The notes under the pieces: generated by a model
The model's database searches: none
What the model was told of the DNA's origin: nothing
Seen by the model: only the letters and a program-made list of their open reading frames with translations
Position numbers and translations under genes: made by a program
Source: Oikopleura dioica
Taxonomy: Eukaryota > Animalia > Chordata
Assembly (NCBI GenBank): GCA_907165135.1
Contig: OU015567.1
Coordinates: 11,222,001-11,286,000 of the forward strand
DNA: 64,000 nt
Direction of reading: 5' to 3'
Shown: positions 2,126-35,697 of the stretch, piece by piece
How positions within the stretch are numbered: position 1 is the stretch's first letter
How the letters are laid out: every line of letters starts with the position of its first letter

Positions 2126-2140
2126 GCACGCGGAGCGTGC
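2126..2140 (+). promoter_or_regulatory. Dispersed hairpin motif GCACGC-GGA-GCGTGC, copy 1 (+ orientation)
   Basis: Exact 15-mer, perfect 6-bp stem with GGA loop; T-rich box about 12 nt upstream. Confidence 0.85.
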
Positions 2141-2363
2141 CCTCTGGACGAAAATGCTTTTGGAATCTGTTGTCTTCTATGTCTTCACATTTACATATCG
2201 GCTCTGTGACGGCTTCTTTCCTAAGTTTTCTGTTAATCTTTTCTTTTTGGCCATATCAATCGCCGAATCATGGTCTTATCATTTATTGACAAAAATGAGC
2301 GAAGTAGGAAGTCGCTTATTTACGTTGTCTGTACTTAGGTTGAAGACTCACTTTGGTAAGCAG

Positions 2364-3028
2364 TAAACTTCGAATCAAATATGCTTCGAGTGGAATACAT
2401 TCATTCTTAGCATTCAACTTATTGACTTATGAGACTGTGTCTTCTATGTATTCAGCTTTTAAAATCATCGAAAGGTTGTTTTTTTTACTTTTTATTTTTA
2501 CAAGAGTTAATTCATATTTTCTAGAGAAACTGGTGTTTCTCACCACACTGAGAAGCGCAAAATTTTTTTTTGCGTGTTTCTCAGGCTCTAGAAAATATTT
2601 GTTTATAAAAACGCCACTCTTTATGGATTATTTATTCTCAGAACAAATTCTTTCTAGAGCCTGCGAAGCACACTAAAGAGTGTTTTGCGCTTCTCAGCTT
2701 GGTGAGAAACACCAGTTTGTCTAGAGAATTGCGGGAGTTAGCACATTGCGGTTGGCCCGCGGCACCTCCGTGCTTTCATGGTTACATGGTGTATAATCCT
2801 CCTTTTTTGAAGGCTTCAAGTTGAAGTTTGTTCATCTTTATTCTTCCCTACTTAGCACCTTAAATTGAACATATTCAACTCTGGTCAGTTCGGTCCACTA
2901 CGCCGAATCATGCTCTCATAATTTATTGGAAAAAGATTCAAATCGGACAAAGTCTACTTCCGTTGCTTACATGGGTTGAGTAATCGCTTGGTTAACTTCG
3001 AATCAAATACACTCCGAGTGGACTACAT
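2364..3028 (+). repeat. Two degenerate short arrays of the 16-bp TACACTTCGA-N repeat (about 2364-2398 and 2994-3028)
   Basis: aacttcgaatcaaatatgcttcgagtggaatac and aacttcgaatcaaatacactccgagtggactac match the family seen at 4.1, 5.8, 17.1 and 35.8 kb. Confidence 0.6.
2517..2728. mobile_element. Foldback/MITE-like palindromic element, copy A (~210 bp)
   Basis: About 46-nt terminal inverted repeats (ttttctagagaaactggtgtttctcacc...gagaagcgcaaaa) plus nested inner inverted repeats; related copies at 27.8 and 28.5 kb. Confidence 0.8.
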
Positions 3029-4092
3029 TGATGCTTAATTTCTATTTTGAATTCTCCATGCTTGCACTGACTGTCAACTTTTTTTTGCTAGTTTTTTTGT
3101 CACGGTCTTGGTTTTATTGTGATTTTGCTAGTAAATTTTTCGCAAGAACAGTGAAATAGTTTAGGAAATATTGTGTCTTTGGTTTAGACCTTGGACATCG
3201 AACGAATATTGTCATCTATGCGTCGAGGGATAACAGGTACTCCATGTTAGTTCTCTTGTTCGCTTGATATTTAACTGATTTTATTGATCTATTTCTAGGT
3301 ATCAGGCGTTCCTGGCTAACAAGTCTCAGCCTCATATTCTTAATTTTCATGGCATCTCCTGGTGTCTAATTAAAGGTACAAAATTGTTATTTAGTAAGGC
3401 TCTCGCCCAAAAAAAAAGAATACATAGAACAATCCAGAATGTCCATTGTATTCTTTGCTTTGAGAAAATTTTTGTTATTTGTCCCTGGCTTTATGAGTAT
3501 ATCGGCGTCTCGAGTAATGTCCAGCATATTTTCTATCTTGCTGGTTATTTCGCTTTGTTTGCTTAGTTAACAAGCGAATATAAACAGTCATTATTTTTTT
3601 TTAACGTCGATACAATTGTAACTTTATAAGCTTTCCTGAAGTCCACGTAAATATCCCCATTGGTTCTGCTTCCACTGCTTTCGTATCTTGATATAAAATC
3701 GGAAGCTTGGGCGATGACCTGTTCGACTAAAATAAATTTTTATTCTTTGCAAATATTTAATGTTTACGTTTTGTAATAAGTCTCTTGCTGTCCATGATGA
3801 GAGGATGATCTTGATCTGAATAAATTTGTTGTTATCGTCTTTTAATGAATATCAACGATATGCACAGGTACAATGCGTCAAATTCTCTAACATCAACTAA
3901 ACTGGCATTTCGCGGCGGTCAATAATAACTCAATATGATCTAGAATTTTCCGTTCTCTAAAATTTTAATTTTTTGATCAATTTCTTATTAAATTCTATCT
4001 AAGATTTCTTCTACTAAAAAAGTTGGTTATTCGGCGTTATTGTTTCTCGATGTCAGATTGTAGTCTAAATTTTCCTAGTGATTCTGGATTTT

Positions 4093-4152
4093 ACTTCGAA
4101 TGGAATACACTTCGAATGGAATACACTTCGAATGGAATACACTTCGAATAGA
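4093..4152 (+). repeat. 16-bp tandem repeat (TACACTTCGAATGGAA)x~4
   Basis: Directly visible tandem units. Confidence 0.85.
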
Positions 4153-4559
4153 ATAACAAATTATGCTAATTGCTCATTTTCTTTTGGGCCGACGTAGAAA
4201 ACTAACTATTACGAATTTGTGATTGAATAAAAACATAAGGCTAGAATTTTTCAACCCCTTTCAGAAAATTTGTTTACGTAGAAAAAAGATTCATCCTGTG
4301 GCAAAGATAAGTTTTTAGCTTCTTTCGACCCGAATGATGATTAATGCGTGACAAGGCTTGCTACGATATGTTTGAATCCCATGTTAGTCAAACCTGGTAT
4401 GGCTAGAAAATAATTTGATTTGCTGATAGCAGACATATCTAGGGTTTTTCACCGAAGCGCGCGGGGCTCGAACCCACTTTTCAAGCATCGAGAGAATTGT
4501 GCAATGCCACTGTTTTATCAAAGTTTCGGATTTTATTGAATAAGATTATTAATTATTAT

Positions 4560-4872
4560 TTCGTGAAAAAACCCGTGAAAGTCCTCCCGATATCGTTGAT
4601 CATATTTTTGAGACTATGCTCGAAGAAGACGAATGTCGCCGTATGCGCAAATTTGAGAAGGAAATGGAGTCCAGAAGGGCTGAGATCAAAAAATTGAAGT
4701 AAGCTAATTTCTTGAAAGTAAATCTGTTTCTGTTATGATAATCTTAATTTCAAGGGCGGGAAATATCAAACTCGAGCTGGAATTATTGAAAGAAGAGAAA
4801 CAGTTGATCGAAGCGGAGCAACAGGAACTTCGAAAAGAGAGAGCTAAAATTACTGCACTCAAGGAAGCTAAG
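4560..4872 (+). CDS. Exons of a small charged coiled-coil hypothetical protein
   Basis: REKTRESPPDIVDHIFETMLEEDECRRMRKFEKEMESRRAEIKKL followed by a GT donor; next exon GNIKLELELLKEEKQLIEAEQQELRKERAKITALKEAK. Confidence 0.35.
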
Positions 4873-5638
4873 GTGAGCAACCGATAATGAAATAAATCTC
4901 AATTTTCGTAGGACTCGGCGTAGACGATGTTACTTGAGGCTTTCCTGATTGCTTTTCAATTCAAAAATTTCGAAAATCAGTAAAATCCTGTTTGAATCTT
5001 ATTCTCTTGTTCAATTTAAAATTTGTCTCATCTCATTTTCGATTGCAAAATTGCTTTTTCGAAATAAATAGTGCTCCTCTGAATCACGCTTTTTCTGCGC
5101 CATTTCTAGAAATTCGCCAATGAGAAGAATAAATGCGGGTCGCGAAAAATGGCGATTCTATTCCTATTTGGCAATCCAATAGACTCAATATGGCGACTTT
5201 TTAATTTGAGAATTGAATTGCATATGAAAACTATCGCCGATTAGAAATAACTCATTTTCTGTCTATCGAAAATGCTGACCCGCCCGCATCAAGCGACTAA
5301 ATCGAGTAGAATTCCTATCGAGTCGGCGCTCGGTGGTCACTACGCGTCACGGGGCTTTCGAAGTCAGAAGAGAAAAGTCGCTATTATTGGCTAATCAAGA
5401 TTTCATTTTCAATTGACTCGTACTGCAACTACTGGATTTCGACTGCGAGAGAAATAAGTCGCGTAGAAGATATAGAGAAAGCGTCCTGCTCATTCTTCTT
5501 CTTGCTTATTTTCTTTTTGGTAGGAATGATTTTTATTTTACTCCGCGAATATTTCAATTCTTGTTCTCAATGGTTAAGTTCTGTCGCTGCAACGGTCAAC
5601 TCTGCTTGTAATTTGTCTTTTTGTGTCCATTTATTGCT

Positions 5639-5653
5639 GCACGCGGAGCGTGC
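5639..5653 (+). promoter_or_regulatory. Dispersed hairpin motif, copy 2 (+ orientation)
   Basis: Exact GCACGCGGAGCGTGC, with ttgtgtc 11 nt upstream. Confidence 0.85.
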
Positions 5654-5834
5654 CATTACTCTCGATCGCAGTTTTTGAAGTTTTTCTTTTATTTTATTTG
5701 CCTCGAGTTCGCTCTGAACCTACAAATATCACAACTTGTTGAATTATTCTTTCATGTGCTTTCGTTTATTTCCTATTTTTTATCAAGCGGAACTCTGTTC
5801 TCGAGGTCTGATCTCCGTCATAATTTCCGTGGCT

Positions 5835-5884
5835 TACTTCGAACTGAGTACACTTCGAGTGGAGTACACTTCGAGTGGAGTACA
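5835..5884 (+). repeat. 16-bp tandem repeat (TACACTTCGAGTGGAG)x~3
   Basis: Directly visible tandem units. Confidence 0.85.
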
Positions 5885-5929
5885 CCCAAGTTTGAAATCT
5901 GAGTTTTTTAACTTAATTGTGGGTTCTCT

Positions 5930-7203: not shown

Positions 7204-7587
7204 ATGCCCCGTGATGACTCCCGCCTTTTTTGTCGGATTTGTGCATTCTCGATGTGCGAAGAAAACAATCCAAGCATCGCTATAGTTCCCTGTGGACATT
7301 CTCGAATTTGTAAAAGCTGCGCAGACAGAGTCGACAGATGTCCATTTTGCAGGGGCGAAAAGAAAGAATGCATTATCATTCGTGACGAGAATCTTGGAAG
7401 GTCAGGGTCAGTATCTCACTTAACAACAAGCCTTTTCGTACTGGGCATATGCACTGCACGTGCTTATTTGTGCTTGATGCGGACCCTTAATCAAAGAGCA
7501 CAGTTAGTCTGGCAACTTGACCAGCTTCAATATCGTGATATGATGGCTGATTATGAAGGCTCTCGAAATGAAAAAATGCGCCCTTAA
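7204..7587 (+). CDS. Small C3HC4 RING protein (IAP/Mdm2-type RING signature)
   Basis: CRIC...IVPCGHSRICKSCADRVDRCPFCR. Confidence 0.65.
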   Translation: MPRDDSRLFCRICAFSMCEENNPSIAIVPCGHSRICKSCADRVDRCPFCRGEKKECIIIRDENLGRSGSVSHLTTSLFVLGICTARAYLCLMRTLNQRAQLVWQLDQLQYRDMMADYEGSRNEKMRP

Positions 7588-7730
7588 CTGCTCTTTTCTT
7601 TTCCATTCTTGTCCTTCACGAAATTCTCATTGACACTCAATGATATCTTTTTTTTTTTTAAAAATAAAGAAAGCTTATTTTAGAACAAGCATCGTGATCG
7701 GAAAATCCGCGGTTTGAATATTTCGCCTCT

Positions 7731-8303
7731 ATGTCGTCATCTGTAAAGGCGAAATGTGGCTGCTGTGGCCATCCTTTTGCCCCTCCATTCAGGCAAGAGG
7801 TCGCATCAAACCCCTGCACTCATGTGGCGTGCTTGCAATGCTTTCTCGCCCGTGGAACGCTCTATGGCGGAGGCATAAACCGTGATGTTTTCCTACGCTG
7901 CCCGGTCCCTAAATGCCTCAAAATCGTCGGCTTCAATAATCGCGACTTGGTCTTCATTTCACGAGTCCCATTCAACCCGCTCGACCTGCCACCTGCAAGT
8001 AATCAATTCGACTCCTCCGATGATGACGAAGACAACGATCTAAATGAAGGTGACGGCAGCGATTCTAAAAGAGACGGCAATAAGACCACTGGTGCTCCTG
8101 TCGGCGAAACCGCAGATTCTATGGATTATGATCTCATCGACTCCTACTATGATGGCAAAAACAACGATCTTGATGGAGGTGACGGCGGCGATCCTGAAGG
8201 AAATGACGCCAAACCAGCAGATTCTATGGATCGCGGAAAGATCTCTGGTACCGCTGTCATTTGGATTTCTGATGAGGAGCCCGAAGAAACCAATCGTCAT
8301 TAA
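7731..8303 (+). CDS. RING-like protein with acidic, internally repeated tail
   Basis: CGCC...PCTHVACLQC...CPVPKC, then an Asp/Gly-rich tail with a duplicated ADSMD block. Confidence 0.55.
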   Translation: MSSSVKAKCGCCGHPFAPPFRQEVASNPCTHVACLQCFLARGTLYGGGINRDVFLRCPVPKCLKIVGFNNRDLVFISRVPFNPLDLPPASNQFDSSDDDEDNDLNEGDGSDSKRDGNKTTGAPVGETADSMDYDLIDSYYDGKNNDLDGGDGGDPEGNDAKPADSMDRGKISGTAVIWISDEEPEETNRH

Positions 8304-8599
8304 GTGCATACTTAGCTCACGTACAAACGCTTTCGTCGAAGGTTTTTCGACTTATCTGTCGTTCTTTTTTTGATCCCTTTCCTGTCTCATTTTGGGATCA
8401 CATCAAATTTGCTTCTGTGCATACTTTATGTACCTGACATGCGACTTAATCATTTTTAGGAGAAATTTTCTTGATTTTCCTCTGCCTTTTTTAGGTTGGA
8501 AATGTGTTCGATAACCCACGAGTTCCCGATTGTTATAATTTTGAGATCATCGCTAATCTTGCATCTCCCTTGAACATGCTTTCTGTCAATTTTATGTTT

Positions 8600-8614
8600 G
8601 CACGCGGAGCGTGC
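8600..8614 (+). promoter_or_regulatory. Dispersed hairpin motif, copy 3 (+ orientation)
   Basis: Exact GCACGCGGAGCGTGC, with TTCTGTC 12 nt upstream. Confidence 0.85.
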
Positions 8615-8726
8615 CCTTTTTAATCATTTATTCTCTTTGTATCTAATCATGTTTGATTATCTTTTCTCGGCTTTTCTTTAAAGTAGATAGTTGGCAATCG
8701 AGGGATTTTTCAGTGATCGGATCGGG

Positions 8727-9670
8727 ATGAGCGACATGGAATCGTTTTTGAGTTCGTGTACTGACGCCTCATCTAGCGAGGACGAAGACTCTTCAGGTGA
8801 TGACGATCCGTTCAACGAAAAGGTAGAGATCGAATTTCATTTTCTTTAGTTAATTTTACCTTTTTCTAGTCTACAAATGATCCTTTGCTGTCAGAGATGC
8901 CCAAGACGTTTGTGACCTCGAGCCCGAAGATGACATCTTTGCGATCGGATCCTAAAGATGACGAAAATGAAGGTCTTTTTGGTGGCAATGTAAGTTTATT
9001 CTCTCCTTTGCGATCTCTGTGCTTATCAATTACTTAGCTTTCGCCGATACGGGGTGAGCGAAGCGCTTCCGACTCATTTTCAACTAAAGTCCAAGACCCT
9101 CGCTCTGCGAATAATTCCCAAGCTTGTGATGATAAGGCTACAAATTTAATCGACTCCAAGACGACATTGGCGAAAGATGACATCGGCTTGATGGATGAGG
9201 AGGGTGATTTCGACGACGATCCTTTCAATTCCCTTTTTCCGAATCACAAGAGAAAATCTTTGGGACGTAGAACGACCTCGAAAAAGGTGCAATTGCCCCG
9301 CAATTCTTCGACAAAATCAAAACCTTCCAGTCAAAACATCAAGGCCCATAGTGGCGGACGCACTCGTTGCACTGGCTCTCAATCTGGCCCAAAGCAGACT
9401 AAAAACCTTCAAGATGATTTTGTCAGAAACAGTCAAGAGCTTTTATCTACTCCGCATAATTCGCCATCGTCGTCGCCTCAAATCTCCCGCTCGTCTTCTC
9501 GCAGCTCCTCACCGACAACTTCGAAGGCAACAAAACCAACCACGTCGAAAAAAGTAAAACGAAGACCTGAAAAGTGCCAAGATGAGGCACTGGAGCCTCA
9601 AGTGAAGAGATTGACTAAGCCTTCGAAAAGTGCCGCGAATATGTCGCAGGAGATGACTCTCCAAATCTAG
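8727..9670 (+). CDS. Ser/Asp-rich low-complexity protein, possibly the 5' part of the transposase gene
   Basis: ttttcAG acceptor before ATG 8727; two GT-AG introns join in frame to ORF 9167-9670. The link to 9841 onward needs frameshifts. Confidence 0.4.
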
Positions 9671-9840
9671 AAGATATTGCTCGTCCTTCTCAACAGCTGA
9701 ATGATCAGATTGATTTTTGTTGGATAATACTCGACCTCACACTGGATTGAGCCATGCTGAGGATATGGACGTTTTTGGCAATGGAGAAGGGGATCTAAGC
9801 ACGTCAAACTTTTTTCGTCGAAACTCCAGCGCAAATCCAC

Positions 9841-12800
9841 GGAGTACCAGATCCTGAAAAATTCATCGATCCAAATTCGGAAATGAAAAAGGGTATTCAG
9901 CGTGACACCGGCGATGAACCAATGGTATCGATCCCTTTGTCTGCAAAAAGGAACATTCTTCATACCTACATATCTGGCAATGGGAATCCTTGCTGCATCG
10001 TTGAATATTTTCTTCCAGTGGACGACGGCGATGGTCAAGACCTGCGTGATCAACCTTCTACTTCAACGGCGCCAGAATCTGCCACGCCTTGGACATGCTC
10101 CATTCCAAATGCAAAGAGAAAGATTCTCAAAAAAAACAAAGCTAGGCGGTCAATTCCGTCGGCAGCTCAGACAAGAAAAGTTGTTTATCATATGCAATAC
10201 AATGGTTGCAACAAAAGGTAAATGGCTTGCACGATTTTAAATAACACTTATTCGTTATCTTAGAGGCAATGGTGCTGCGTCTGTCCATCTCAAGTGTCAA
10301 AACTGCTCTGGTCGCCAAACTGTTTATTGCGACGCGTCTTACATCATGCCAACTAAATCTGGCTCTTCATGGATGATAAACCCAGAAAAGGTGCAACTCT
10401 TTTGGCATAACGCGAAGATGGATCCTCCTGGCGACCATACGCGTCTTAGCCCCAAATACGAGCACAAATGCAGAGGTCTAACGAGGCAAAAAATCGCCGA
10501 AATTACATATGAGTCCGGAATTCTGGTATTTTGTGTAGAGTTAATAGTTTCTGAATAATTATCTAGAAAATGGTTGATCAGATGGGACCTACGGTCACTG
10601 CTCAGTCAGTGCGTGATCATATTAAAACTGTACAGGAAACTTACCCCGAATGGACGCCACACTACGAAGTATCACGATACATAAAAAGATGAGAAACCGA
10701 AAACGATTCTACCGGCGACAAATGCGGGAGGAGTTCAAGCATCGTGACGAACGAGTTCCACTCGTCCCGAAGGTTCTTTCGACTCTGAATTATCACAAAA
10801 GACTCGACGGCGAAGGGTTTGCGAATTTACGGTGGCCATGCGTCGTAACCGATAGGTTTCTAATCGGTAAATAAGCTTGTTTTTGTAATTAACCGTTGTT
10901 CTTATTACGCTTTTTAGTCGCAGATTTGCTAATGCTGTCTCGATTACCTCCAGCATCATTCATTAGAATGATGCTGGATGGTACTTTCACCATATCTGGT
11001 GATTTTCGGCAATGCATCACGATCCAGATAGCAATCACTGATGACACTGGAAACACGGATTACAGATTGGTTGCCGCCATTTATCTCCTCAGTAAGAAGA
11101 AGTTGGACTATGCTGCTGCTTTCTATGCATTCTGGCAAGTGTTGACGAGCATTCACGACTCAAGCGTAATTAGCACCGTCTTTGCTCAAACTGACGGTGA
11201 GATGTCATTGTATCTTGGGTAAGGCTAAATTTTTATCTTTGCAGAAGCCATTAATTTTTCCCAATTAAGCGCAGAGAATGGCCTCAAAAAACACAGCGTC
11301 AATGTTCTTTCAACAATCTGCCAAGTCCATCTGGAGCGGGCGCTCTACAGAAACCTCAAGTCCATCATTGGCTTTCAAACTACGCCCGCAGCTGTCCGGA
11401 TCTTCACGTTCATGATGAAAACGATAGTGAGTACCTTTTTGTTTTTTTTACCTAAAATTTTTTGTTAAGCAATTGGTCAGACCGGATCTCATTATGCCGA
11501 GTCTTCTGGGATTATTCGCTCTTGTCCAGAGGTTGCCAAGATATGGACGAAGAATTTCCCGTTTCTTGCGGGATTACTGTCAGCGAGTCATGGGGCAGTA
11601 CAGAGACAGGTTCTGCTACTACAAATTACTCCTGTTGGCGAAGAAAGAGCGATCGTCAGTTTGTTTGTCGACGAATCCGTCGGAGTCGTTAAACAATAGC
11701 TTGAACAGCCAGTTTCGGGCTAAATTCAAGAAGGTAATTTTGATTCTATAGCGACAGCCATACTTATTATCGTGTTTAGCGAAAGGGCAATTTAGACGAG
11801 GACTTGTTGTTGTTATACGAGTTCATGGATGAATCTGGGCTCAATTATTATCAAGGTCATGTCGATAAGCAACGCGAAGATGAAAACGATCAGGCTGCGA
11901 ACCGAGAGGCTTACGTCAGGAAAGTGATGGACCGATGCGAGCAAGAGGAAATATATGAGCGTGGCATGCCCTTTCCGAGAGAATTTTTCATGGACCTCGT
12001 AAATTTAGCGCTTGAGCGTTTTGCGGTAAGAAAGTTGATTTTACGTTTCATTAATTTCTTTTCAGGAGAAAGCGCCCGCGCGTCTCACTGCCATTCTTCG
12101 AAAACGATGGGCACGTAATCGGCTCGAAGAACGCTTAAAAGAAATCGAAGATGGCAAAGTCAAAGCAGCTGAAATGGACCCGGAAACCGAAGAAGATCGT
12201 CTGGCAGATGAAGAAATTGCAGAGAATGATGAGCCATGTGACGTGCCTGTCGGCGCTATTGAAGATGAAATCATGGCTTCTGGCGATGAGGGTGATGATG
12301 GGATAGAGCTGAACGTAACTCGCGCGATCGGATCACTTAAATTACCCACTACGGTACAGCATGAAATGGCTATGGGCGATCTTCTTGAAGGAGCTAGGGC
12401 GCACAGTGGCGCTGCTGGGCCAAGTCGAAACAGCGACGTAGCGAACGCGTCTCCTGTAAACGGAGCCAATGAGACGCAAGGTGATTCGAATGGAACAAAG
12501 GGCATTGGCGCTGTCGAGCACTCAGCTAACATGGTGACAGAACAATCGAATCCAACGACTGTGAACGGAATATGCGACATTGGCACTGTAGAAACCTCAG
12601 CAAACATGGAGACCGAACGTGCAAATCCGGAAGCTGCTAACGACACAAATGGAGACGACCTGCTTCAGCTTGATTATAGCAACCCTTTTGAGTCGGAATC
12701 CGACACCGACATTGAAATGCCACCATCAACCGACGAGGAAGATGACGCAGACGACGGAGAACAATCGGAAGAGGACTCAATCGATTGGGGATTCAATGAC

Positions 12801-14393: not shown

Positions 14394-14430
14394 AGAAAGA
14401 ATCTCGAGCTTTGAATTCATTCTTTTTAGA

Positions 14431-15444: not shown

Positions 15445-15465
15445 ATAAATAGGTAAGTAAAAAGG

Positions 15466-15480
15466 GCACGCTCCGCGTGC
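15466..15480 (-). promoter_or_regulatory. Dispersed hairpin motif, copy 4 (flipped orientation)
   Basis: GCACGCTCCGCGTGC on +, then 12 nt, then TACAGAAA; lies just after the PCNA-A stop. Confidence 0.85.
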
Positions 15481-15748
15481 ATGTATAACTATTACAGAAA
15501 GAATAGTTTCGTCATTTTTATAATGAGTTCTTAATCCGCAGAAACAAATTTGCATCCAGTTTTTTTTTAAGTAAAATTATTTAGCCGATCCACAGCTGCA
15601 ACAACATCTTTGCGTCTTGGCCCATCACTACTCTTCGAAAAATTTAATCGACTTGTCATCGCTTGTAGTTTATATTTTTCTTTTATCTGCTTGCTACTTT
15701 TGCCTGGAAAAATATTAAATCTTTTTTATCTCAATCGTGTATTTGAGA

Positions 15749-16731: not shown

Positions 16732-16781
16732 AAAAAATGGAGACATGGTTGATCAGCTTGAATTAAAAGATATTTTTAAGA

Positions 16782-17795: not shown

Positions 17796-17845
17796 TAAAG
17801 TAATTTCAACTTGAAATAATATCGCATCTTAATATAAAATTTCAG

Positions 17846-23700: not shown

Positions 23701-23869
23701 ACTGCAATCGGGTTATTCTTTAATTGCAAAAAAATAAACTGATTTGCATAGTGCGACATCGAAATACCCGTGAAAAAAAAGGAAAATCCTAAAGTTTACC
23801 AATTTCAGATTGAAAGCTGTCGTTTACTTTTCTATTAAACGTTCATAAAGCAGAACTTGGTGCACGATG

Positions 23870-23884
23870 GCACGCTCCGCGTGC
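23870..23884 (-). promoter_or_regulatory. Dispersed hairpin motif, copy 6 (flipped)
   Basis: GCACGCTCCGCGTGC, then 13 nt, then GACAGAAAA. Confidence 0.85.
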
Positions 23885-24018
23885 GAAAATAAGCAAAGAC
23901 AGAAAATGACCTGACACAGACGATTCGTTCGACTTCCTTGCAATTTATTTCTATATTGAACACACTGACAGCTTGAATCGCGCACCAAAAAATTGACTAG
24001 ACCCAGCTTATTTAGATA

Positions 24019-27479: not shown

Positions 27480-27676
27480 TTATCAACTGCAAATATAGAA
27501 AAAAAAATTCCACCACTGAAAAAATCTTAAAGCGATAAGATTTAAATTCAGCATTCGAAGCGATAAAAAGCAGGGCAGAGAATTCTTAAAAAGACGCAGC
27601 AGAAAATCAAAACTTTGAAATTTTCAGAGTTAGTAACAGAGTGGGAATCGGAACAACTCGAATAAATGAAATAAAG

Positions 27677-27691
27677 GCACGCTCCGCGTGC
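27677..27691 (-). promoter_or_regulatory. Dispersed hairpin motif, copy 7 (flipped)
   Basis: GCACGCTCCGCGTGC, then 14 nt, then GACAGAGAA. Confidence 0.85.
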
Positions 27692-27782
27692 GTATATAGA
27701 ATAAAGACAGAGAATGCAGCAAATAAACCGATTTATTTTCATCCGAAAATATTTAATTGAATGCTGATAGTTTAAATCAACC

Positions 27783-28000
27783 AATTCTCTAGAAAGTGAA
27801 GTGTTTCTCACCTAACTGAGAAGCGCAAAACAATTCTCAGTGTGTTTCTCAGACTCTAGAAAAATATTTGTTTACAGAAACTCAACCCCCTTTGGGCGTA
27901 TCAACTAAAAAAACAAATTTTTTCTAGAACCTGAGAAACAAACCAATTCATGTTTTGCGCTTCTCGGCTTAAGTGAGAAACACCAGTTTCTCTAGAAAAT
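27783..28000. mobile_element. Foldback/MITE-like element, copy B
   Basis: Same terminal and nested inverted repeats as 2517-2728. Confidence 0.8.
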
Positions 28001-28454
28001 TCTTGATGTTCTTTTATGAATACGGATTTTAGTTTCTCTTTATGAAAAATTGATTTCTTCTACAAGCGAAATAAATTCGTATCAAAATAATCCTTATGCA
28101 TCCGCAATTATATAACTTTTTTTTTACTAGTTATGCAAAAAAAAAAGGAAAAAAAAAACAGACGACAATGAGCTCTTTTCAACATAAGCTGCGCAAGTAT
28201 TGCAATAGTGCTCAGCGTCGATAAGATTAGACAGAGAATTTTATTTGCCGCTAAAAAAGCATCGTTAGACACAGCACAAAAATAAGAATGTGTCATTGTT
28301 GAGCGGGAAGCGCCGACTTTGGAGATTACAATGGCAGGGCAGACATGATTTGAGGCAACCTTGTCCCCATCAATCCTCCGCAAGCATCAATCGATTCCTT
28401 AAGAGTTTTTACGCAAAATAGATTACTTGCAAAGTAATAGAAATTTACACAATC

Positions 28455-28662
28455 TTTAAAATAAAAGAAATGATTTTCCCTCCGGGAAACGCATAGAATT
28501 TCCACGCATGCTTCTCAGGCTCATAAAGAATAAATATTAAAATAAATTAAAACCCTTATTGGCAAATAAAAATCAAAACAAATTCTAACTAGAGCATAAG
28601 AAACATAACGAAAATGTTTTGCGCTTCTCGGCTTAAGTGAGAAACACCAGATTTTCTAGAGA
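28455..28662. mobile_element. Foldback/MITE-like element, degenerate copy C
   Basis: Right arm tgttttgcgcttctcggcttaagtgagaaacaccag matches copy B; left arm is decayed. Confidence 0.55.
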
Positions 28663-29592
28663 AGTTTTGTTGTGAAATTGCTAGCAGATCGAATGACTTA
28701 CGAAACTCACACAACAAATTTGCTTTTCTCATCCTGTCCAAGAAGCGCAAAATTTGACAGAGCTCATTACGGCTCTATTTAAATATTCACATAAATCTTA
28801 CTTGTATGGTATCATGCATTTATTTGGTAACCAGACGACTCATGAGTAAACATTCTAAATAAAAAAAAGTAATGTACTTATTGTCTTTCTTATCTTCAGT
28901 CTGATGCATTCTAAAGTAAGCTGTGCAAAACAATAACAGACGTCAGTCAAATCGAAAATAATGATTGAAGCATAAATTCAGGGGCAGTCTAGGTAGAATC
29001 AGTAACTGCTTCTTCTTTGTTTGTATATTGATCGATTGAAAATATTATTTTCCTACCTTGACCGCTTCGTAATTGAATTGAATTGAACGAGATTATTGCT
29101 TAACACCTCAAACTTTCCGTGTAGAAGGTTAATTGCCTTAACCTTGTTCATGACGAGCTTCATCGCCTGGAAACATTCATCTCTATCCATTGCTCTGATT
29201 ATGACCTATAATTCATAAAACTATTGAACAACCAAAAAAAAAAACAAGATTACCCCAGCTCTTTTCAACATTTGACGGAAAACGTCCTTGAGAGAATTCT
29301 CGTTATTCACGAGTTGTTTCGCCAACTCGCTGCTTATCTTCTTCTCGACCTCATTGCTCCCGCCCCTTGAAGATTATGAGTATAGCCCGTTTATAGTTAA
29401 CTTACAAATGATAATTAACCCGAGCGATGAGACGATTCACTCGTCCAATTAATAGTTGGAGACGCCCAAATGGTGGAAGCGCGTTGAGTAAGTCCTCTCG
29501 AGAAAAGTCAGGTTGTTGATTATGCGAACATGACATAGCAACCGAGTCTTAAAAATTAATTTTAAATTATCTAATAGATAAATTTGTAGATG

Positions 29593-29607
29593 GCACGCTC
29601 CGCGTGC
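29593..29607 (-). promoter_or_regulatory. Dispersed hairpin motif, copy 8 (flipped)
   Basis: GCACGCTCCGCGTGC, then 12 nt, then GACAGAAAA. Confidence 0.85.
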
Positions 29608-29861
29608 AAATATATTCATGACAGAAAAAAACCGATATAAGAAGAAGAGTAAATTCATAGCAGATTCTTTTCAACAGAGCAAATCATCTTCGTTGCTTTG
29701 TGAAACTACAAGCAGACGTCTTGAAAACTTGAGAATAACAGAAAAGTATTTAACAGGTCTTCTTTTTCTGGGGGTTAGATTGGGTATTGGTGAACGAAGA
29801 AACGGTAGATTTACTTAAACAAAAACATGTTTAAAGAAATGAACTTCAAGAGAAAAAAAAA

Positions 29862-32800
29862 TTACCCGTCTTTAGAGGGCCCACAATGGTCACTGGAATC
29901 GCTCAAATCAACCTCCTTCGAATCATCTGCTTGTGCGAGGGAAAAGGGAGTAAGAACAAGTGATGAATTCAGTTTTTTGGTTGCGGCGGTCTTGATTGCC
30001 CTTGGTAGATCACAGAGAGGATGCTTTTTATTCGGCCAACGGGTAAGTTCGATGACATTATCGATGTCACTCTTCGCCAAACTGATAAAAGGAGTATTAT
30101 AAACAAAAAGACAGAATAACCTGTGTCCATTCATCAATTGAGCAATATTTTTCACTGCTTCATCGACCGTTAAAAGCTTTGTAGACGCATTTAACAAAAA
30201 CTGACAGTAGAGATCTTTGAAGCTCGGTCCAAAATAACAGGCGATATCAGAGCGAGAATAATACCAACTTGACCGAGCGTGGGACGAAAGTAATGCTAAA
30301 TAAATAAGTACGTGCAAAGAAACAAAAAAAAAAAACTTACTCGCAGTCCTCCCGTTTTTCATATAGGAAGAACTATTTTTCAAGGCAGAAGGAAATTTCA
30401 TAAGCGAACGATCGATAGAACCATCGATATAGCATCCGGGAAGACGAGAGAGTGTGGATAGGGTATCGCGTAAATCGTAGCGATGGCGTTTCGTCATCAA
30501 TGTTTCCATTATGTCGCATGAAGAAAGGGAGTTTGCGGCGAGAGATAATTTTTCCTATGAACAAGTAATAAATAGAGAAAACCTTTTATAACCTGATTGG
30601 AGAAACGCTGTTCGGGAACGACCCTTCCGTAGTTTTCAAACACCATGTTCAACATGAGATCAGGATAACAATCATATAATCTGTCCATTTCAGCGAGCTT
30701 GTCGTCGAGAGAATCCGTCGCATTGAAAATGTTCCCTTCCAAATAACGCGTCGAAGCTTCAAATAAATGGGGTTTCTTGTCTTTCAAACTTGCATGGAAC
30801 ATCGATTCAGAAACAGGTTGCGAATCTACAAGGCCAAATATAAGTAATTTATTTTTTTTTTTTAAATTGCGATAAAAAAAAACCTTTATTGTCCCAGGCA
30901 AGCATATTTATTGTATTGATACATTGACGAACATCAAACTGGCAACGAAGTATTATTGCGCGAAGGCATTCATCGGGTATTGACAACTTCTCCACATAAG
31001 TAATTTTCCTTAAACGACCTAAAAATAATTCGAATTCGAAAATAAATGAGTACGAACCAAAAATCTGTGTCGAATTTAATGCTGGGAAGTGTAGTTCGTA
31101 CATATAACTCCGAAGACTTTTGAATTTAGGAGCGGAGCAATTATTCGCAATAGCAATTATGGGAATATCGGTGAGTTTTACAAGACTAGTAAACTCAGCA
31201 AGGCCACCACGGTCTTCACATCCGCAAATGCCGTCTACTTCATCCATGATCAATATATACTGATCGTTCATCGAGCTGATATTAACATTACTATAAAGAG
31301 GTACTACAGAAAAAAAACTACAGAAAAAATTTGAATCGACATTATAGTACCAAACTGAGAGCTTCGCAGACGACATCACGAATTGATTTTTTTCCGCGGT
31401 CATCGCTAAAAAACGCGTCAGAAAACAGCCGAGAATAAAAGAGCCGCGCATATGCAGAAAATTTTGTCCGTCTTACCTAGCATTAAATTCGATAACGTGA
31501 AAACCAGCTTCAGCCGCAACAACGTGTGCAGTGGAAGTCTTACCAATACCAGGAGGACCAAGTAGAAGAGCACCGCGTAAATGATTGCCAGAAACAACAG
31601 GTTGAAATTTCGATTTTCCGCGGTTCTTTGTTCCTTCCTCGAGGCTTGACTTCCAGTTTTTGAGCCAGGCGAGCAATTTAGCAGCGTTCGAAGACGAATG
31701 ATTTTGCCCAATTATATCTTTTATACGAGTTGGTTTATATTTGTCGACGTAAAGAACAGCGTGATGGTCCGGATCGCAGGATTTAGGCGGAGCTTCCAAT
31801 TGCATGCTAGAGTTTGAATGGAAAGAATTGTCGGCATCAAATCGTTCGGAAAAAGACGGGGAGGATCGTATAAGGTGAAAAAGAGCAGCCTCGTCAATAA
31901 TACTGACTTTTAAACGCTTAGCCTTCTCCAATTTACATTTTCCAGGATTGAGCCCAGCAACCAAATAATGAGTACTTAGAGATAAGAAAGAAGAAACGGT
32001 GCCGCCATGGGAAGTTATCAATGAAGTGAGTTGAGGTCGATTCATGCTATCGCCGTCTCCAGTCAGAACAAAAGTGAATCCAGCTAGACATTTTCGTTTG
32101 CCCTGAGGAATAATCCGAGAGCCAGGATTCCTTGCAAGACCAATACTATGCCATGGATGATTCAACATTTTATTTTCCGGGAGTGAACTCGTGCAGGGGG
32201 CAGCCGCGGAAACATTAGAAATGTCGGCAAGAGCGGGGGAAGCATGAGTTGTAGTCGAATCAATAGCAGCGCAATTTTCCAGACCTGGCGCTTCTGAACC
32301 TTCAGCTTTTTCGTTAGACTCTAACGAAACTGGAGAACGGAGGTCATCGTTGAGAGTAGGACTTGTAGGCCGTGGCGATTGCTCGAAAACGACAGTATCT
32401 TCGTCTAGACAAACGAGATTTCTCGAATCAGTAGAATGGTAGTTTTTTGGACCATACACATCCGAACCTTCAGCTTTTTCGATAGAAGCAGTAGCGTTTT
32501 GAAAACGAGGGTCCTCCTTGACAGAAGCTGAATCGGAGGTTGCACCAGGTGTAGGACTTGCAAGACGAAGCGATTGTTTGAGGACGATAGTATCATCTTC
32601 TAGACTGACAAAATTTCTCGAATGGGTAGCAGTGCAGTTACCAAGAACAGACACATCCGAAGCTTCAGCTTTATCGACTGACACTGAATTAATTGGAGAA
32701 CGAGTGCCTTCGTTGACATATGCAGAATTAGATGATGAACCAAGAGTAGGACTAGCGGGCCGATAAGGTTGGTTGATTACCACAGTATCATCTTCTAGGT

Positions 32801-34002
32801 TGCCTAAATATGATGATTATCAGATTAAAGACAATTCTCGTACCAATTAAATAAGGAGGTTCTTCTGAACCAGAATCAACTGATCTGGCAGACGAGGAGA
32901 TATGAGCAGACGCCAACTTGTTATTTGAACCCGCGTTCGAATCAGTTTTGGAGATGTCAGCATTGATCTTTTGTTCGTTCCGTTTTCCATCGTTATCACG
33001 ATTGGGCGAAATTTGCGGAGAAGTGCTTATAACTGAGCCAATTTCACAGGATCTTCGAGACAAAGAAGCACGAACAGGAATTGACTCATGAGGTATATCG
33101 AATGAACTAGGATCGATTATGCCCGCCAGACGTCCGATCGAAACCCGACATTTTTTTATTTTTTTGTAGAATTCCGTCAACCTCACAATTAGAAGCGCGA
33201 ATTTAAGTAAACCAAATCTAATCAATTTTTTTTCGGCTCTTTTATGAGGTCGATTCAGAGTATTGTCCGACGAACCTCGATCCAGATTCCGGGGACATAT
33301 TCGATCCTAGGGGTGAAGATCTAATAAGGGTGAAAACAATATCTTCGTCGATGACAGCGATTCCATACGCTTCAGCCCGTTTTTCATTGAAGATACCAAA
33401 CGCGTCACCAGCGACGACATAGTTTACATTTTGAGAGAAGGCAGTGGTAACAGTTCCACCAAAAGAAATGATTAAACAGCGTAGCGCGCCTTCGTCCAAT
33501 TTACGACCACTTCCCGAAAGAAGAAAGACCTCACCAAATAGACAATTGGGAACGCCTTCGATGTGGTCGCGAAAGGCATCTTCATAGAAATTTTCCTTGA
33601 AAACAGCATTCATGTCGATGAGAGAAATAGGAGGCAACACAACATCGAAACTCATTCCAGGGGCGTTATTCGGGATGATAGAGTTACCCACAGGAATATC
33701 ATCGTAACTAACTTCTTTGTGGACAATGAAGTTGGAATCAGCAAGGTTAGGTCGACGCGAATCATTGTCTTGAGTAGTAGACACCGGAAAAATGAATCCA
33801 AGTGAACGAAGATCAGAAGAAAATAGAGCAGGGGGCGAAGTATTCTCTTTATCAGGAACGCCATCGACAGAAGCAGAGGAAGTTGATTGCTTTGAAAAGC
33901 TGGAATTAAAGTTGCAAATAACAGAATAAAAAAACCAGCCCTTTCCTTTGAGGAATCAGTTACAGATATAGAGATAAAACCAAGGTCAATTAAGCTCTTC
34001 AT
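29862..34002 (-). CDS. RFC1: Replication factor C large subunit (RFC1)-like clamp loader with two BRCT domains; multi-exon, 3' end uncertain
   Basis: BRCT-1 EGVPNCLFGEVFLLSG, BRCT-2 QGKRKCLAGFTFVLTG...IDEAALFHLIR, YVDKYKPT, Walker A GPPGIGKT, Walker B LIMDEVDG, DRGG, IPIIAIAN and DVRQCIN. Confidence 0.9.
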
Positions 34003-34260
34003 TGCAAAGAAAACAGCAAGCGCACATCGATCCCTAAAACAGTCAAACTAAAAAAAAAGAAAAATTTTCTAGAAAAGAACTGTTTGTAGTTCTATTAAAC
34101 AAGCAAAAAAGGGTAAAATATACTTAAAGAAAGAAACTTTCTAGAATATTGTTGTTTTTTAACGCAAAAGGTTGTCTCCCTCACATCACATACATAGGAA
34201 TATATAGGCTGGAAAAATGAGACAAAGCACCAGTAGCAAACGTAAAAATTTGTGAATAAG

Positions 34261-34572
34261 ATGTCCAGCGCAGAAACAAGTGGCAATAATGTCGTCAAGA
34301 GCGGCTTCAAGCGCCACAGAAAGGTGCTGAAGGATAACATTCTTGGCATCACCAAAGCCGACATCCGTAGGCTTGCCCGACGAGGCGGGATTACGCGCAT
34401 GTCGGCCGAGGTAAACGACCTGGCCAGGGAAATTATAAGGTCCGACCTTATGGACCTCGTCAGTGACGCCATCACCTACACCACACACGCCAACAGAAAG
34501 ACAATCGTAGCCCTTGACGTTGTCTATGCACTCAAGAGACAAGGCCGTCAACTCTACGGATTTGGGGGATAA
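34261..34572 (+). CDS. H4: Strongly diverged intronless histone H4 variant (103 aa)
   Basis: [25 protein letters not shown] and [18 protein letters not shown]; same length as canonical H4. Confidence 0.95.
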
Positions 34573-34596
34573 AATCCTACCAAAGTCTTCAAAACA

Positions 34597-34612
34597 GGCC
34601 CTTTTAAGGGCC
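34597..34612 (+). promoter_or_regulatory. Replication-dependent histone mRNA 3' stem-loop
   Basis: GGCCCT-TTTA-AGGGCC 24 nt after the H4 stop, flanked by AAAACA and ACAAA; matches the metazoan consensus. Confidence 0.9.
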
Positions 34613-35171
34613 ACAAATACAATAAAGTTGTCTTTACAGCACAGAAGAAAGAATGAAAGAAATAAATAACAAAAATACTCTAGAAAAATGAAAGAATTCA
34701 CAATATATAAATAGTCGTAAATGATAAAATGACTCACCCGACGTGGACCAATGAGAGCGCACAAGCGCCGGTGCACCAGGAGCGAGAAAAATCCAATTTT
34801 ACTAGCTTCGCCCAATAGATCTAGAGCATAAGTGAAGGAAAATTAGAGAATGCCTTTCAACGCTTCTGCCAAAGCGAAATTAGGCAAAAATTAGAGAATA
34901 TCCGTCACTTATGAACTAAATCGAATCGAGCACCCATTTTTGACCTTAGTATAAAACGAAAGAACGCATTTATTAGCGAAGGAGTAAAAATTTTTTCGAC
35001 AACGCTTCTGCCAAAGCAAGGTCGACATAAAAATACAAGAATAAGAGTACTCTATCGCTAATAATCGCATCTTCCACAAAAAATTTTGCTCGATTATTTT
35101 ATCACAACTAACTTCTGCCAAAGTAATTTGAGATAGAATATTCGAGCTGAGTACAATATAAAACGATTACA

Positions 35172-35373
35172 AAAAAAAGCTATAGGTCTCACCAGAATGT
35201 AGCCCTTGAGGAAACGCCCACAACCTCCCACCCTCCCCAAAAATACACCTCTTTTTTATACTTCGAATAACAAACATATAAAAAATTGGGGCAAAAAAAG
35301 CCGCAGGTCTCACGAGAATGTAGCCCTTGAGGAAACGCCCACAACCTCCCACCCCCTCCCCAAAAATACACCT
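35172..35373. repeat. Direct duplication of an ~80-bp block with C-runs (G-quadruplex-like on the minus strand)
   Basis: aggtctcac(c/g)agaatgtagcccttgaggaaacgcccacaacctccc...ctccccaaaaatacacct occurs at about 35172-35250 and 35293-35373. Confidence 0.85.
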
Positions 35374-35393
35374 GTTGAAAAAGTTCGGGAGGG

Positions 35394-35408
35394 GCGCGCT
35401 CCGCGCGC
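35394..35408 (-). promoter_or_regulatory. Hairpin motif variant with compensatory stem change, GCGCGC-TCC-GCGCGC
   Basis: The A-T pair of the stem is replaced by G-C at both paired positions; the loop is unchanged. Confidence 0.7.
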
Positions 35409-35480
35409 GTATATATTAAGACGCACAAATAGAGGGTATTAGAATTAGGGAAGGCGGAGCAGGAAGTTGAGCAGGCCGGC

Positions 35481-35690
35481 TGGAGGAAGTGGCACGCTTC
35501 GCGTGAACCCTGTTGTAAGTGGAGGAATTGGCACGCTTCGCGTGAACCCTGTCGCTAGAAATGGCACGCTTCGCGTGAACCCTGTCGCTGGAATTGGCAC
35601 GCTTCGCGTGAACCCTGTCGCTGGAATCGGCACGCTTCGCGTGAACCCTGTCGCTGGAATTGGCACGCTTCGCGTGAACCCTGTCGTTGG
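35481..35690. repeat. 33-bp tandem array x6, each unit containing GGCACGC-TTC-GCGTG
   Basis: Unit GGAATTGGCACGCTTCGCGTGAACCCTGTCGCT; cores at 35491, 35530, 35563, 35596, 35629 and 35662. Confidence 0.95.
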
Positions 35691-35697
35691 AATTCTT

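Follow-up and report, generated by a model that had tools for sequence, protein, structure and literature searches.

What a short DNA hairpin is for, when it recurs every few kilobases among additional DNA-replication genes in an animal chromosome, is the question raised by a locus on chromosome 2 of Oikopleura dioica (Okinawa). The hairpin motif recurs across an island, at least 37 kb long, that carries these genes, and we examined it in a window of 64,000 nucleotides (the whole stretch of DNA analysed, to which all positions refer). An exact 15-mer occurs eight times, at 2126, 5639 and 8600 on the + strand and at 15466, 21296, 23870, 27677 and 29593 on the − strand. These are the copies listed by an earlier, sequence-only reading, and their chance expectation from shuffles is 0. 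In 8/8 the 15-mer is followed by a C, giving a shared 16-mer. In a further copy, at 35393–35408, A has become G and T has become C at symmetric positions, so that the stem still pairs; this confirms the compensatory change previously noticed there, and a tenth copy in + orientation lies 949 nt left of the window (L035:1320-1335). The dispersed set (n = 10) consists of nine identical 16-mers and one symmetric two-base variant. When up to three mismatches were allowed over the whole 64 kb, only this variant and six array units (35491–35677) joined the exact copies: decayed copies were not found, and the region 36.1–64 kb contained no copy. Free variation of loop and stem, which would have spoken against a conserved signal, is not seen at this threshold. 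In phage and metagenome contigs rich in GC the 16-mer by itself is also present, either through chance or as a bacterial repeat; it alone is not organism-specific.

The dispersed copies share more than the hairpin. One common element is a TAT, invariant at −7 to −5 in 10/10 column counts and separated from the hairpin by a fixed 4 nt, which reads as TATA in half of the copies. Another is a T-rich box that accompanies all ten copies on the same side each time; the same-side second box of the earlier reading thus holds, and the column counts added, besides the TAT, a T at −20 (10/10) and a T at +17 (9/10). Variation of the hairpin itself is limited to the middle base in the loop (GGA versus GAA) and, among dispersed copies, to the single paired change in the stem. 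Triloops of the d(G-N-A) kind closed by a C-G pair are unusually stable. The mid-loop and paired changes fit the proposal that variation preserves a C-GNA-G hairpin; however, the symmetric change also fits the palindrome of a double-stranded dimer-binding site, and in a nearest-neighbour model the stability is identical for either strand.

A dimer on the double-stranded palindrome, beside a TATA-like element, is the basis of a possible explanation that we consider nearly as likely as the one preferred below: the module would be a core promoter, operator or upstream element co-regulating the island's replication and chromatin genes, with the six-unit array as an enhancer or boundary. The placement of the modules bears on this point. 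All copies are intergenic or inside annotated introns. The first module (2106–2143, +), made up of T-rich box, TAT, 16-mer and then CT, lies inside the span of an annotated − gene (765–3795), and the second (5618–5656, +) lies 444 nt upstream of an annotated + gene start at 6098. The third (8580–8617), which is the final + copy, is found 297 nt past the stop of a 190-aa gene and 112 nt before an ATG at 8727. The first − copy (15463–15501) separates PCNA-1, whose stop (15329) is 137 nt away, from PCNA-2, whose ATG (15749) is 270 nt away; the next (21293–21331, −) sits between an ORF stop 55 nt before it (21241) and a + strand ATG 38 nt beyond it (21348). The sixth (23867–23905, −), inside the span of an annotated 500-aa gene, has an ORF stop 262 nt before it (23608) and an ATG 135 nt beyond it (24019). 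The seventh (27674–27714, −) is 198 nt past the PriL stop (27479), with no + strand gene next, and the eighth (29590–29628, −) follows the RFC1 end (29750) by 143 nt and precedes by 57 nt the start of a − strand gene model of 145 aa that has weak support. In the module of the stem variant (35391–35431, −), the TAT is retained and the box is farther off.

An ATG is thus found 38–450 nt off, on either side, for 6–7 of the 10 copies, and the gene set is functionally coherent. Nevertheless, about three quarters of the intergenic spacers border a gene start anyway in this compact genome, so this proximity has little weight. No gene start lies near 27677, 35394 or the left-of-window copy, and the confident starts of RFC1, H4, PriL, PriS and both RING genes are without the module. 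The sense relative to the downstream gene is also inconstant (three same, three or four opposite): 8600 is on the same strand as the + gene it precedes, while 15466, 21296 and 23870 are opposite to theirs. The earlier statement that the copies do not look like ordinary promoters was nevertheless too quick a dismissal, for a TAT at fixed spacing resembles a TATA box, and the intergenic or intronic location of every copy suits a regulatory module. In O. dioica, stage-specific programmes are known to rely on short core-promoter motifs at set positions, for example TCTAGA, which in testis lies at about −45 (PMC6389100), and TCTAGA is present in the divergent RFC1/H4 promoter of the island (34068 and 34140). 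The hairpin motif, on the other hand, is absent from the motifs of the genome-wide start-site mapping in that species (PMC6389100), and a literature search gave no match to it.

The positions just given also allow the modules to be read on the complementary, purine-rich strand, as RNA 3′-end or intergenic processing signals. A 16-nt hairpin, a spacer of 13–16 nt and an ACAGAAA-type purine box would then be laid out like a histone 3′ stem-loop with its downstream element, giving the replication-gene mRNAs histone-like, S-phase-coupled ends or marking operon spacers. Four consecutive right-arm modules do lie 55–262 nt past + stops (PCNA-1, the ORFs ending at 21241 and 23608, and PriL) in the orientation needed, the canonical poly(A) signal is absent between stop and hairpin for 2 of the 4, and the island's own H4 gene has a genuine histone stem-loop. 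However, the left-arm copies are wrongly oriented for the + genes they follow, and in two of the left-arm boxes the AG is missing. The modules at 29593 and 35394 have no + strand gene ahead of them, and the terminal array is left unexplained. The Rfam histone stem-loop model recognises the H4 site alone; even at E = 5 it gives no match at any module. We regard a processing signal as improbable.

The gene content of the island was examined together with its right border. Its proteins include a divergent RFC1, two to three PCNA-like proteins, PriS, PriL and an H4 variant. A RING-finger gene (7204–7587, +; Pfam zf-C3HC4_3, E = 5.5e-9) is followed by the annotated 190-aa gene (7731–8303, +), a cysteine-rich, acidic orphan with no homologue but itself. 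PCNA-1 forms the 3′ end of an annotated 1317-aa composite gene (9883–15329, +; PCNA_N match at 14221–14649), and PCNA-2 (15749–17659, +; annotated, 276 aa) has both PCNA_N and PCNA_C. The domain exons of PriS, the primase small subunit (18927–19752, +), lie inside an annotated 577-aa gene starting at 17770; PriL, the large subunit (25835–27479, +), is annotated with 247 aa, below the usual length. The clamp-loader large subunit RFC1 (29750–34002, −) has 1153 aa in 11 exon blocks, and the divergent H4 gene (34261–34633, +), which matches neither H4 form of the 2011 Norwegian histone catalogue, ends in a canonical histone 3′ stem-loop (34592–34633). The introns in the island, RFC1 included, are tiny and of the ordinary O. 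dioica type; with this stem-loop and the TCTAGA elements, they make the island genes resemble resident nuclear genes. A scan of about 70 ORF pieces yielded no DNA polymerase, helicase, origin-binding protein, capsid or integrase, and the island is no visible autonomous replicon; nor was an RNA polymerase or confirmed transposase found in it. The packaging role once suggested for the hairpin has no support, because neither a capsid nor a terminase gene showed up in the island.

Terminal repeat arrays mark the right end of the island, at about 36 kb. Immediately inside them are two 84-nt direct repeats (35172–35376). Six tandem 33-bp units (35485–35694), each with a 5-bp-stem hairpin and a GAA/TTC loop, are followed by a second 33-bp array of 3.2 copies (35696–35800) and by an inverted pair of arrays of 16-bp TTCGAA-containing repeats (35831–36035), which form the right border itself. 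The same 16-bp family recurs internally at 4093–4155 (+) and at 2363–2409, 2991–3037, 5836–5885 and 17096–17158, and is not found in 36.1–64 kb. The six units had been described as differing from the dispersed copies only in the middle loop base, which proved incorrect: their first stem base is also T, so that the outer pair is lost, the TAT is missing, and a CTGTC pentamer is on the opposite strand. For these reasons the polarity of the array is ambiguous. The neighbouring host gene, an FHOD-type formin (36038–38056, −), ends 17 residues past its FH3 domain, and its stop codon directly adjoins the terminal array.

Such a border makes the island look inserted, and the modules could be remnants of transposon ends or recombination sites, the island being a giant cargo-carrying DNA transposon. 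A GC-rich palindrome, a spacer of 12–16 nt and an A/T-rich box would form a bipartite binding site for a transposase or recombinase, and the copies are inverted between the two sides of the island, as in terminal or subterminal repeats, and the right border carries an array. The repeat families of the island are missing from the adjoining 28 kb (0 found), the orphan lacks an outside homologue, and the H4 falls outside the catalogued forms. In the ORF pieces at 10896–11751, motifs reminiscent of Mutator-type DDE transposases were recognised by eye only; Pfam gave no transposase or recombinase domain there, even at E = 5. The modules at 8600 and 15466, which share the longest extended similarity of any pair (57 nt at 79%), flank these pieces, but a target-site duplication around the pair was not found. 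Ten internal copies spread across unique, gene-bearing DNA are unlike a terminal-repeat layout, and the orphan and H4 proteins are each on one contig of the assembly, which gives no sign of transposition. We therefore consider a transposon origin of the modules unlikely.

The strongest regularity concerns the strand. In 10/10 dispersed copies the hairpin is on the locally T-rich strand (±300 and ±1000 nt, module excluded; sign test, about 0.002), the four left copies being + and the six right copies −. The cumulative A–T and purine–pyrimidine curves reach a minimum at 9080–9522, where the + strand switches from a T-rich to an A-rich arm, and the orientation switch (8600 to 15466) brackets this minimum; the polarity claimed earlier is thus borne out. 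From there the curves climb steadily and level off at about 36 kb, which places the end of the skew domain at the terminal arrays. At four-fold sites, the coding-strand A–T skew is about −0.11 to −0.15 in host genes, +0.23 in the right-arm + genes (p = 0.002) and −0.46 in the − strand RFC1 (p = 1e-18; unchanged without internal repeats). In both right-arm sets the shift is about 0.35 in the direction of A on the + strand, and the right-arm skew is independent of gene direction, while the left-arm RING genes are indistinguishable from the host baseline. The signal is polar relative to the DNA, not to the genes, and the motif is oriented by the two compositional arms of the island. A regulatory module predicts neither the T-rich-strand rule nor the switch at the skew minimum. 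A variant of it, with oriented architectural (insulator-type) sites, agrees with the copies facing inward from both sides, which is how oriented loop anchors are known to be arranged.

These observations lead us to prefer, with a probability of roughly 0.35, a DNA signal that acts on one strand and is linked to the direction of replication, for example a hairpin on the lagging or displaced strand. Replication would expose the T-rich strand of each arm as single-stranded DNA (lagging-strand template or displaced strand), on which the 6-bp stem and G-N-A triloop would snap back. The hairpin might then serve as an entry mark for the island's own PriS/PriL primase and for RFC1 with the PCNA paralogues, and synthesis would begin on the pyrimidine-rich tract (TAT and T-rich box) 5′ of it, heading away from the fork. 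The geometry implied is that forks enter at both borders, at the tandem arrays, and meet near 9–10 kb. Archaeo-eukaryotic primases lay down a purine first, opposite pyrimidines of the template, and the phage G4 complementary-strand origin, plasmid ssi sites and vertebrate mitochondrial OriL are known cases of hairpins that signal priming on a displaced or lagging strand. The replication-direction signal is supported by the near-identity of the copies with no decayed ones, by the strand rule and the flip at the skew minimum, by the independence of both skew and motif orientation from gene direction, by the restriction of variation to the mid-loop base and a stem pair, and by the primase subunits, clamp paralogues and clamp-loader subunit encoded in the island. 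The structure-specific signal proposed from the sequence alone is accordingly supported in part; priming, clamp loading and transposase binding would be candidate roles of the hairpin. New relative to that proposal are the invariance of the TAT and T-rich box, the T-rich-strand rule, the flip at the skew minimum, the right-arm shift toward A at four-fold sites and the inconstant gene-relative orientation.

Several points weaken the same reading. One is spacing: a site per 2–7 kb is far sparser than Okazaki fragments, and nuclear lagging-strand priming is not known to require a sequence signal. Another is composition: an exposed strand with cytosine deamination is expected to show a G-over-C excess, while the skew is nearly all A versus T, the G-over-C excess is absent or mixed, and the left-arm RING genes stay at the host baseline. 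The resident look of the genes and the lack of a visible autonomous replicon, the equal folding of both strands and the TATA-like TAT also count against it. The last is that skew and motif could have been turned together by a single inversion with one end near 9 kb, so the V-shaped skew need not mark a meeting point of forks.

Known systems resemble the motif in different respects. Phage N4 virion RNA polymerase promoters act through a one-strand DNA hairpin with a GC-rich 5–7 bp stem and a three-base loop, which the motif may resemble. There are only a handful of them, however, all at one end of the phage genome and ahead of the genes that they drive, whereas the motif's orientation ignores gene direction; a single-subunit RNA polymerase gene was not found in the island. 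The histone 3′ stem-loop (Rfam RF00032) resembles the motif's complement in its 16-nt hairpin, spacer and purine box past the stops of S-phase genes, and differs in its four-base loop (three in the motif), the absence of a covariance-model match and the wrong left-arm orientation. The TCTAGA male-specific core-promoter element (Danks et al. 2018, PMC6389100), also of O. dioica, is a short palindrome at a fixed position in a T-rich context, serving a stage-specific gene set and occurring in the RFC1/H4 promoter; its sequence is different, and it is genome-wide and CAGE-tied to transcription starts, unlike the hairpin module with its inconstant gene-relative orientation, known from sequence. The hrs of baculoviruses and other large arthropod DNA viruses, compared by description only, are likewise element-specific, imperfect palindromes between genes every few kb and in tandem arrays, acting as enhancer and origin in assays; they differ in forming arrays at every locus, in lacking strand polarity, and in consisting of ~30-bp palindromes bound by a viral transactivator, and no viral hallmark gene was seen in the island. 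Chi, KOPS and Ter of bacterial chromosomes flip with compositional skew regardless of gene direction, as the motif does, but these sites of 8–23 bp are read as double-stranded DNA by RecBCD, FtsK or Tus, none of which is in the island; Chi and KOPS are far more frequent, and Ter acts as a fork trap. The single-strand initiation signals of phage G4, plasmid ssi sites and OriL are single sites in small replicons, each with a known priming enzyme, whereas the island has ten dispersed copies and an array in animal nuclear DNA. As is proposed for the motif, however, they are short stable hairpins functional only on an exposed strand, with an adjoining pyrimidine-rich tract, where the primer starts in those systems, and with an orientation fixed relative to fork movement, as it would be for the putative forks of the island.

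The eight exact 15-mers listed in the sequence-only reading, three on the + strand (2126, 5639 and 8600) and five on the - strand (15466, 21296, 23870, 27677 and 29593), were all recovered at those positions, and shuffled sequences are expected to contain none. All eight share C as the sixteenth base. When up to three mismatches were allowed across the 64 kb, the additional matches were confined to a variant at 35393-35408 (-) and the six units of a 33-bp array (35485-35694); no decayed copies of the module were found at this threshold, and the region from 36.1 to 64 kb contained no copy of the 16-mer. The variant, named copy 35394, carries a symmetric paired change that preserves the stem, as had been claimed. 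A tenth dispersed copy, in the + orientation and with the same flanks, is located 949 nt outside the left edge of the window (L035:1320-1335, on the contig stretch adjoining that side). Among the ten dispersed copies aligned by column, T at -20 and TAT at -7 to -5 are both invariant, while T at +17 occurs in nine; TAT is extended to TATA in about half of them. The position of the T-rich box relative to the hairpin shifts by 1-3 nt, and the conserved span is ~39 nt. The array units had been described as changed only in the middle base of the loop; this description proved incomplete, because their outer stem pair is also lost, TAT is absent, and the CTGTC pentamer lies on the opposite strand. 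For these reasons, the six-unit array has no clear polarity. In the folding model, each strand is predicted to form a 6-bp stem closed by a 3-nt loop, at about -7 kcal/mol and without strand preference. The stability advantage of the G-N-A loop for one strand is knowledge from the literature and is not given by this model, and cruciform extrusion from double-stranded DNA is unlikely with a 6-bp stem.

The orientation of the module is + in the four left copies and - in the six right copies. The genes between 4.6 and 27.5 kb are all on the + strand; thus, the module orientation flips within a block of same-strand genes. The proposal that the signal is polar was upheld: each of the ten copies is on the strand that is locally rich in T when the module itself is excluded from the composition. 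On the + strand, T prevails over A at 2-9 kb and A over T at 12-36 kb, and the cumulative A-T and purine-minus-pyrimidine curves both form a V, with a minimum at 9080-9522, a steady rise to ~36 kb, and a flat course beyond. The module orientation tracks the A-T skew in all ten copies and flips at the skew minimum, the skew being only a proxy for fork direction. With respect to the genes, copy 8600 has the same sense as the + gene downstream, and copies 15466, 21296 and 23870 have the opposite sense to the + genes that they precede. An ordinary gene-oriented promoter was rejected, as it fails in one of the two arms into which the island (the DNA carrying the modules and the replication genes) is divided at ~9.1-9.5 kb, and a simple 3'-end signal was rejected on the same ground. 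Since the promoter and 3'-end readings each fit one arm only, while a signal oriented by the DNA strand fits all copies, we favor a strand-specific, replication-linked signal, with a probability of roughly one in three.

As the main rival, itself tentative, we consider a TATA-linked regulatory module. It draws its best support from the invariant TAT: the TATA-like element at a fixed spacing was confirmed in all ten copies, and O. dioica is known to use short position-specific promoter motifs (PMC6389100). However, neither the strand rule nor its coincidence with the skew is predicted by such a module. A core promoter is further disfavored by the comparison with annotated and ORF-inferred gene starts, in which fixed position and orientation were not found: the orientations were mixed, and three copies had no start nearby. 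Copies 27677 and 35394 adjoin no gene start. A male-specific (testis) core-promoter element of O. dioica, TCTAGA (PMC6389100), is found at 34068-34073 and 34140-34145 within the 259-nt divergent promoter of RFC1 and histone H4, with the RFC1 ATG 66 nt and the H4 ATG 121 nt downstream, and the hexamer at 34140 is kept in a Tara Oceans contig. Therefore, at least these two genes are predicted to be male-expressed (testis). If the module is regulatory, it would still mark out a second set of replication genes, compact and co-located, with RFC1, the PCNA paralogues, both primase subunits, and a very divergent H4.

Two other explanations, a transposon end and an RNA-processing signal, are weaker. 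For RNA processing, the RF00032 covariance model matches the H4 site at 34592-34633 and no module even at E = 5, and nothing in Rfam matches the modules at the gathering threshold or at E = 5. As to transposons, the ORF pieces at 10896-11751 (+), inside a long composite gene model, carry motifs that by eye are reminiscent of Mutator-type DDE transposases. The encoded transposase that had been proposed was not confirmed: a Pfam match is absent from these pieces even at E = 5, and the Mutator-type reading was rejected for want of Pfam support. Across the scanned ORF pieces, Pfam gave no transposase or recombinase domain, and no target-site duplication was found around the 8600/15466 pair.

The strand asymmetry is also seen at four-fold degenerate sites. 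On the coding strand, the A-T skew of host genes in the window is about -0.11 to -0.15, whereas it is +0.23 in the right-arm + genes (p = 0.002) and -0.46 in RFC1, which is on the - strand (p about 1e-18; unchanged when its internal repeats are removed). Both right-arm gene sets are thus displaced by ~0.35 toward A on the + strand, irrespective of gene strand. In the left arm, the mirror shift at these sites is found only in the membrane-protein gene; the RING genes, which lie near the turning point, have the host baseline skew. Where synonymous sites show a strong strand asymmetry that is independent of gene direction, this is characteristic of small replicons and not of animal chromosomes. 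The asymmetry of the island is almost wholly one of A versus T, and the absence of the G/C component expected from strand exposure counts against a replication signal. So does the consideration that a single inversion could have flipped the motif and the skew together.

A series of repeats forms the right border of the island. It opens with two 84-nt repeats, continues with the variant module, the six-unit array and a second 33-bp array, and closes at ~36035 with 16-bp arrays in an inverted pair. An FHOD-type formin gene (36038-38056, -) adjoins this border, and its stop codon touches the terminal 16-bp array. Of the 136 positions in the FH3 profile, the last ORF of the formin spans 79-136; it ends 17 residues later, and no FH1/FH2 part was seen in the examined DNA. 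The island may interrupt or truncate this host gene. The genes past the formin are ordinary ones (Mesd, Use1, a proteasome subunit, SNF2, a PLP enzyme and a tRNA), the tRNA being tRNA-Asn (GTT) at 50448-50522 (+), amid the flanking host genes. On the left side, a + ORF ends at L035:447 and is followed by a cluster of 16-bp repeats and the tenth module.

The module is one of three repeat families restricted to the island; the others are the 16-bp TTCGAA repeats and a palindromic MITE-like repeat. The TTCGAA repeats are arranged in tandem at 2363-2409, 2991-3037, 4093-4155, 5836-5885, 17096-17158 and 35831-36035 and at L035:1139-1187, with 16 exact 10-mer cores inside the island versus none in 36.1-64 kb. 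They are nearly all in the + orientation in both arms, and thus lack the change of polarity seen for the hairpin module. The MITE-like repeat is found at 2516-2729, 27784-28009 and 28614-28673 and at L035:1695-1890 and 2025-2240. Each full-length copy has four TCTAGA hexamers; as this hexamer is the published male-specific core-promoter element, the repeats could spread such promoters. Taken together, the border arrays, the formin end, and the confinement of these repeats make the island look like an inserted segment of 37 kb or more, the true left border lying beyond the examined DNA. Whichever reading of the module holds, the island is a clearly delimited part of a chordate genome that appears to have been inserted, and its origin merits clarification.

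The genes of the island were listed from gene calls and Pfam matches, and the spliced models were searched exon by exon. From left to right, they are a membrane-protein gene (-), a small coiled-coil gene (+), a RING-finger gene (+), a cysteine-rich orphan (+), a serine/lysine-rich gene (+), the long composite model (+) with PCNA-1 (14221-15329) at its end, PCNA-2 (15749-17659, +), PriS (+), two genes of unknown kind (+), PriL (+), a weak 145-aa model (-), RFC1 (-), and histone H4 (34261-34633, +). The PCNA and PriS pieces are of the eukaryote type but distant. A candidate third clamp piece follows PriS at 20728-21241 (+; PCNA_N, E = 0.04); with the two annotated PCNA genes, which lie in tandem, it would bring the distinct clamp subunits next to the single RFC1 paralogue to three, as would be expected if the clamp were a heterotrimer. 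No homologue was found in searches with the 190-aa protein of the cysteine-rich orphan gene or with the ORF beside module 21296.

The RFC1 protein (CAG5113008.1, model OKI2018_I69.chr2.g7159) is encoded in 11 exon blocks separated by eight gaps of 36-58 nt and two of about 200-220 nt, which is ordinary for O. dioica, a tunicate whose very compact genome has tiny introns and operons. A viral origin of this RFC1 was ruled out: its nearest relatives are cellular RFC1s (40-45% identity over the BRCT and AAA+ region), the best being a cDNA-like contig. Its large exon contains three internal repeats of ~195 nt (32255-32745, -), and the RFC1 gives two BRCT-domain matches; the usual RFC1 has one BRCT domain. 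The island H4 is only 63% identical to canonical H4, although its gene is followed by a histone 3' stem-loop of canonical form. The published testis H4t, with three residues changed from H4, is a different protein. Two Tara Oceans contigs (L070 and L071), both shorter than 850 nt and neither reaching a module, carry a copy of the island H4 that is 88% identical, its flanks being ~80% identical.

For the favored strand-specific signal, the most economical mechanism would be a hairpin on a strand that is transiently single-stranded during replication. The hairpin would fold there with its G-N-A loop on the T-rich strand, and the pyrimidine-rich tract 5' of it could offer a start place for a primase that begins with a purine. 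Synthesis from this tract would run back toward the nearer border; if forks come in at the borders and converge near 9-10 kb, this is the direction that suits a lagging or displaced strand. The leading strand is usually T-rich, and by this rule the skew of the island points to the same fork directions. The primase, clamps, and clamp-loader subunit encoded by the island are candidates for the machinery acting at the hairpin sites. Several further points weigh against a replication signal: polymerase, helicase, and initiator genes were not found among the island ORF pieces scanned, the island genes resemble resident nuclear genes, the modeled fold is indifferent to strand, and nuclear priming, to our knowledge, needs no known signal. 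More specifically, a resident chordate island equipped with primase, clamp, and clamp-loader paralogues of its own might replicate with fixed polarity from sequence-defined border arrays, the dispersed single-strand hairpins being entry sites for that machinery; we consider this improbable. If true, replication in an animal nucleus would here be programmed by sequence at a specific locus, and such a system may serve over-replication at particular stages or the rapid nuclear cycles seen in the gonad. We know of no sequence-defined, strand-polar replication signals from animal nuclear DNA. If the module is read in replication, sequence-specified replication in animals would become directly testable in a small, fast-breeding chordate.

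No known family was matched by any of the applied tests. In the literature search, the motif string gave chance matches only, the gene cluster was not found, and queries on Oikopleura endogenous viruses or on PCNA with primase returned nothing relevant. The 16-mer scan of the viral contig collection gave 33 matches, about the chance rate, all on GC-rich phage-like contigs; one phage contig (L002, L016, L019) has its own repeat sharing the 16-mer core. The scan of metagenome contigs for the hairpin plus box gave 34 matches, all on GC-rich bacterial contigs, and many of them represent one REP-like repeat family. It was also observed that the 16-mer is the core of a repeat, often in several copies per contig, on GC-rich bacterial and phage contigs (L002, L016, L019; L038, L047, L055, L068, L069 and others), where the stem reaches 7 bp around a GGA loop and TRCTAC comes next. 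This repeat is unrelated by descent to the island module and uses the same hairpin. Phage N4-type hairpin promoters differ in that they are served by a single-subunit virion RNA polymerase; the island ORF pieces scanned gave no RNA polymerase domain of any kind. In layout, the closest systems are the dispersed homologous regions (hrs) of large DNA viruses; however, the hallmark capsid, polymerase, and transactivator genes of such viruses were not seen in the island, and the island genes have host-type introns and nearest relatives of the cellular type. In working principle, the closest systems are the single-strand initiation hairpins (ssi/OriL-type) and the replication-co-oriented motifs of bacterial chromosomes.
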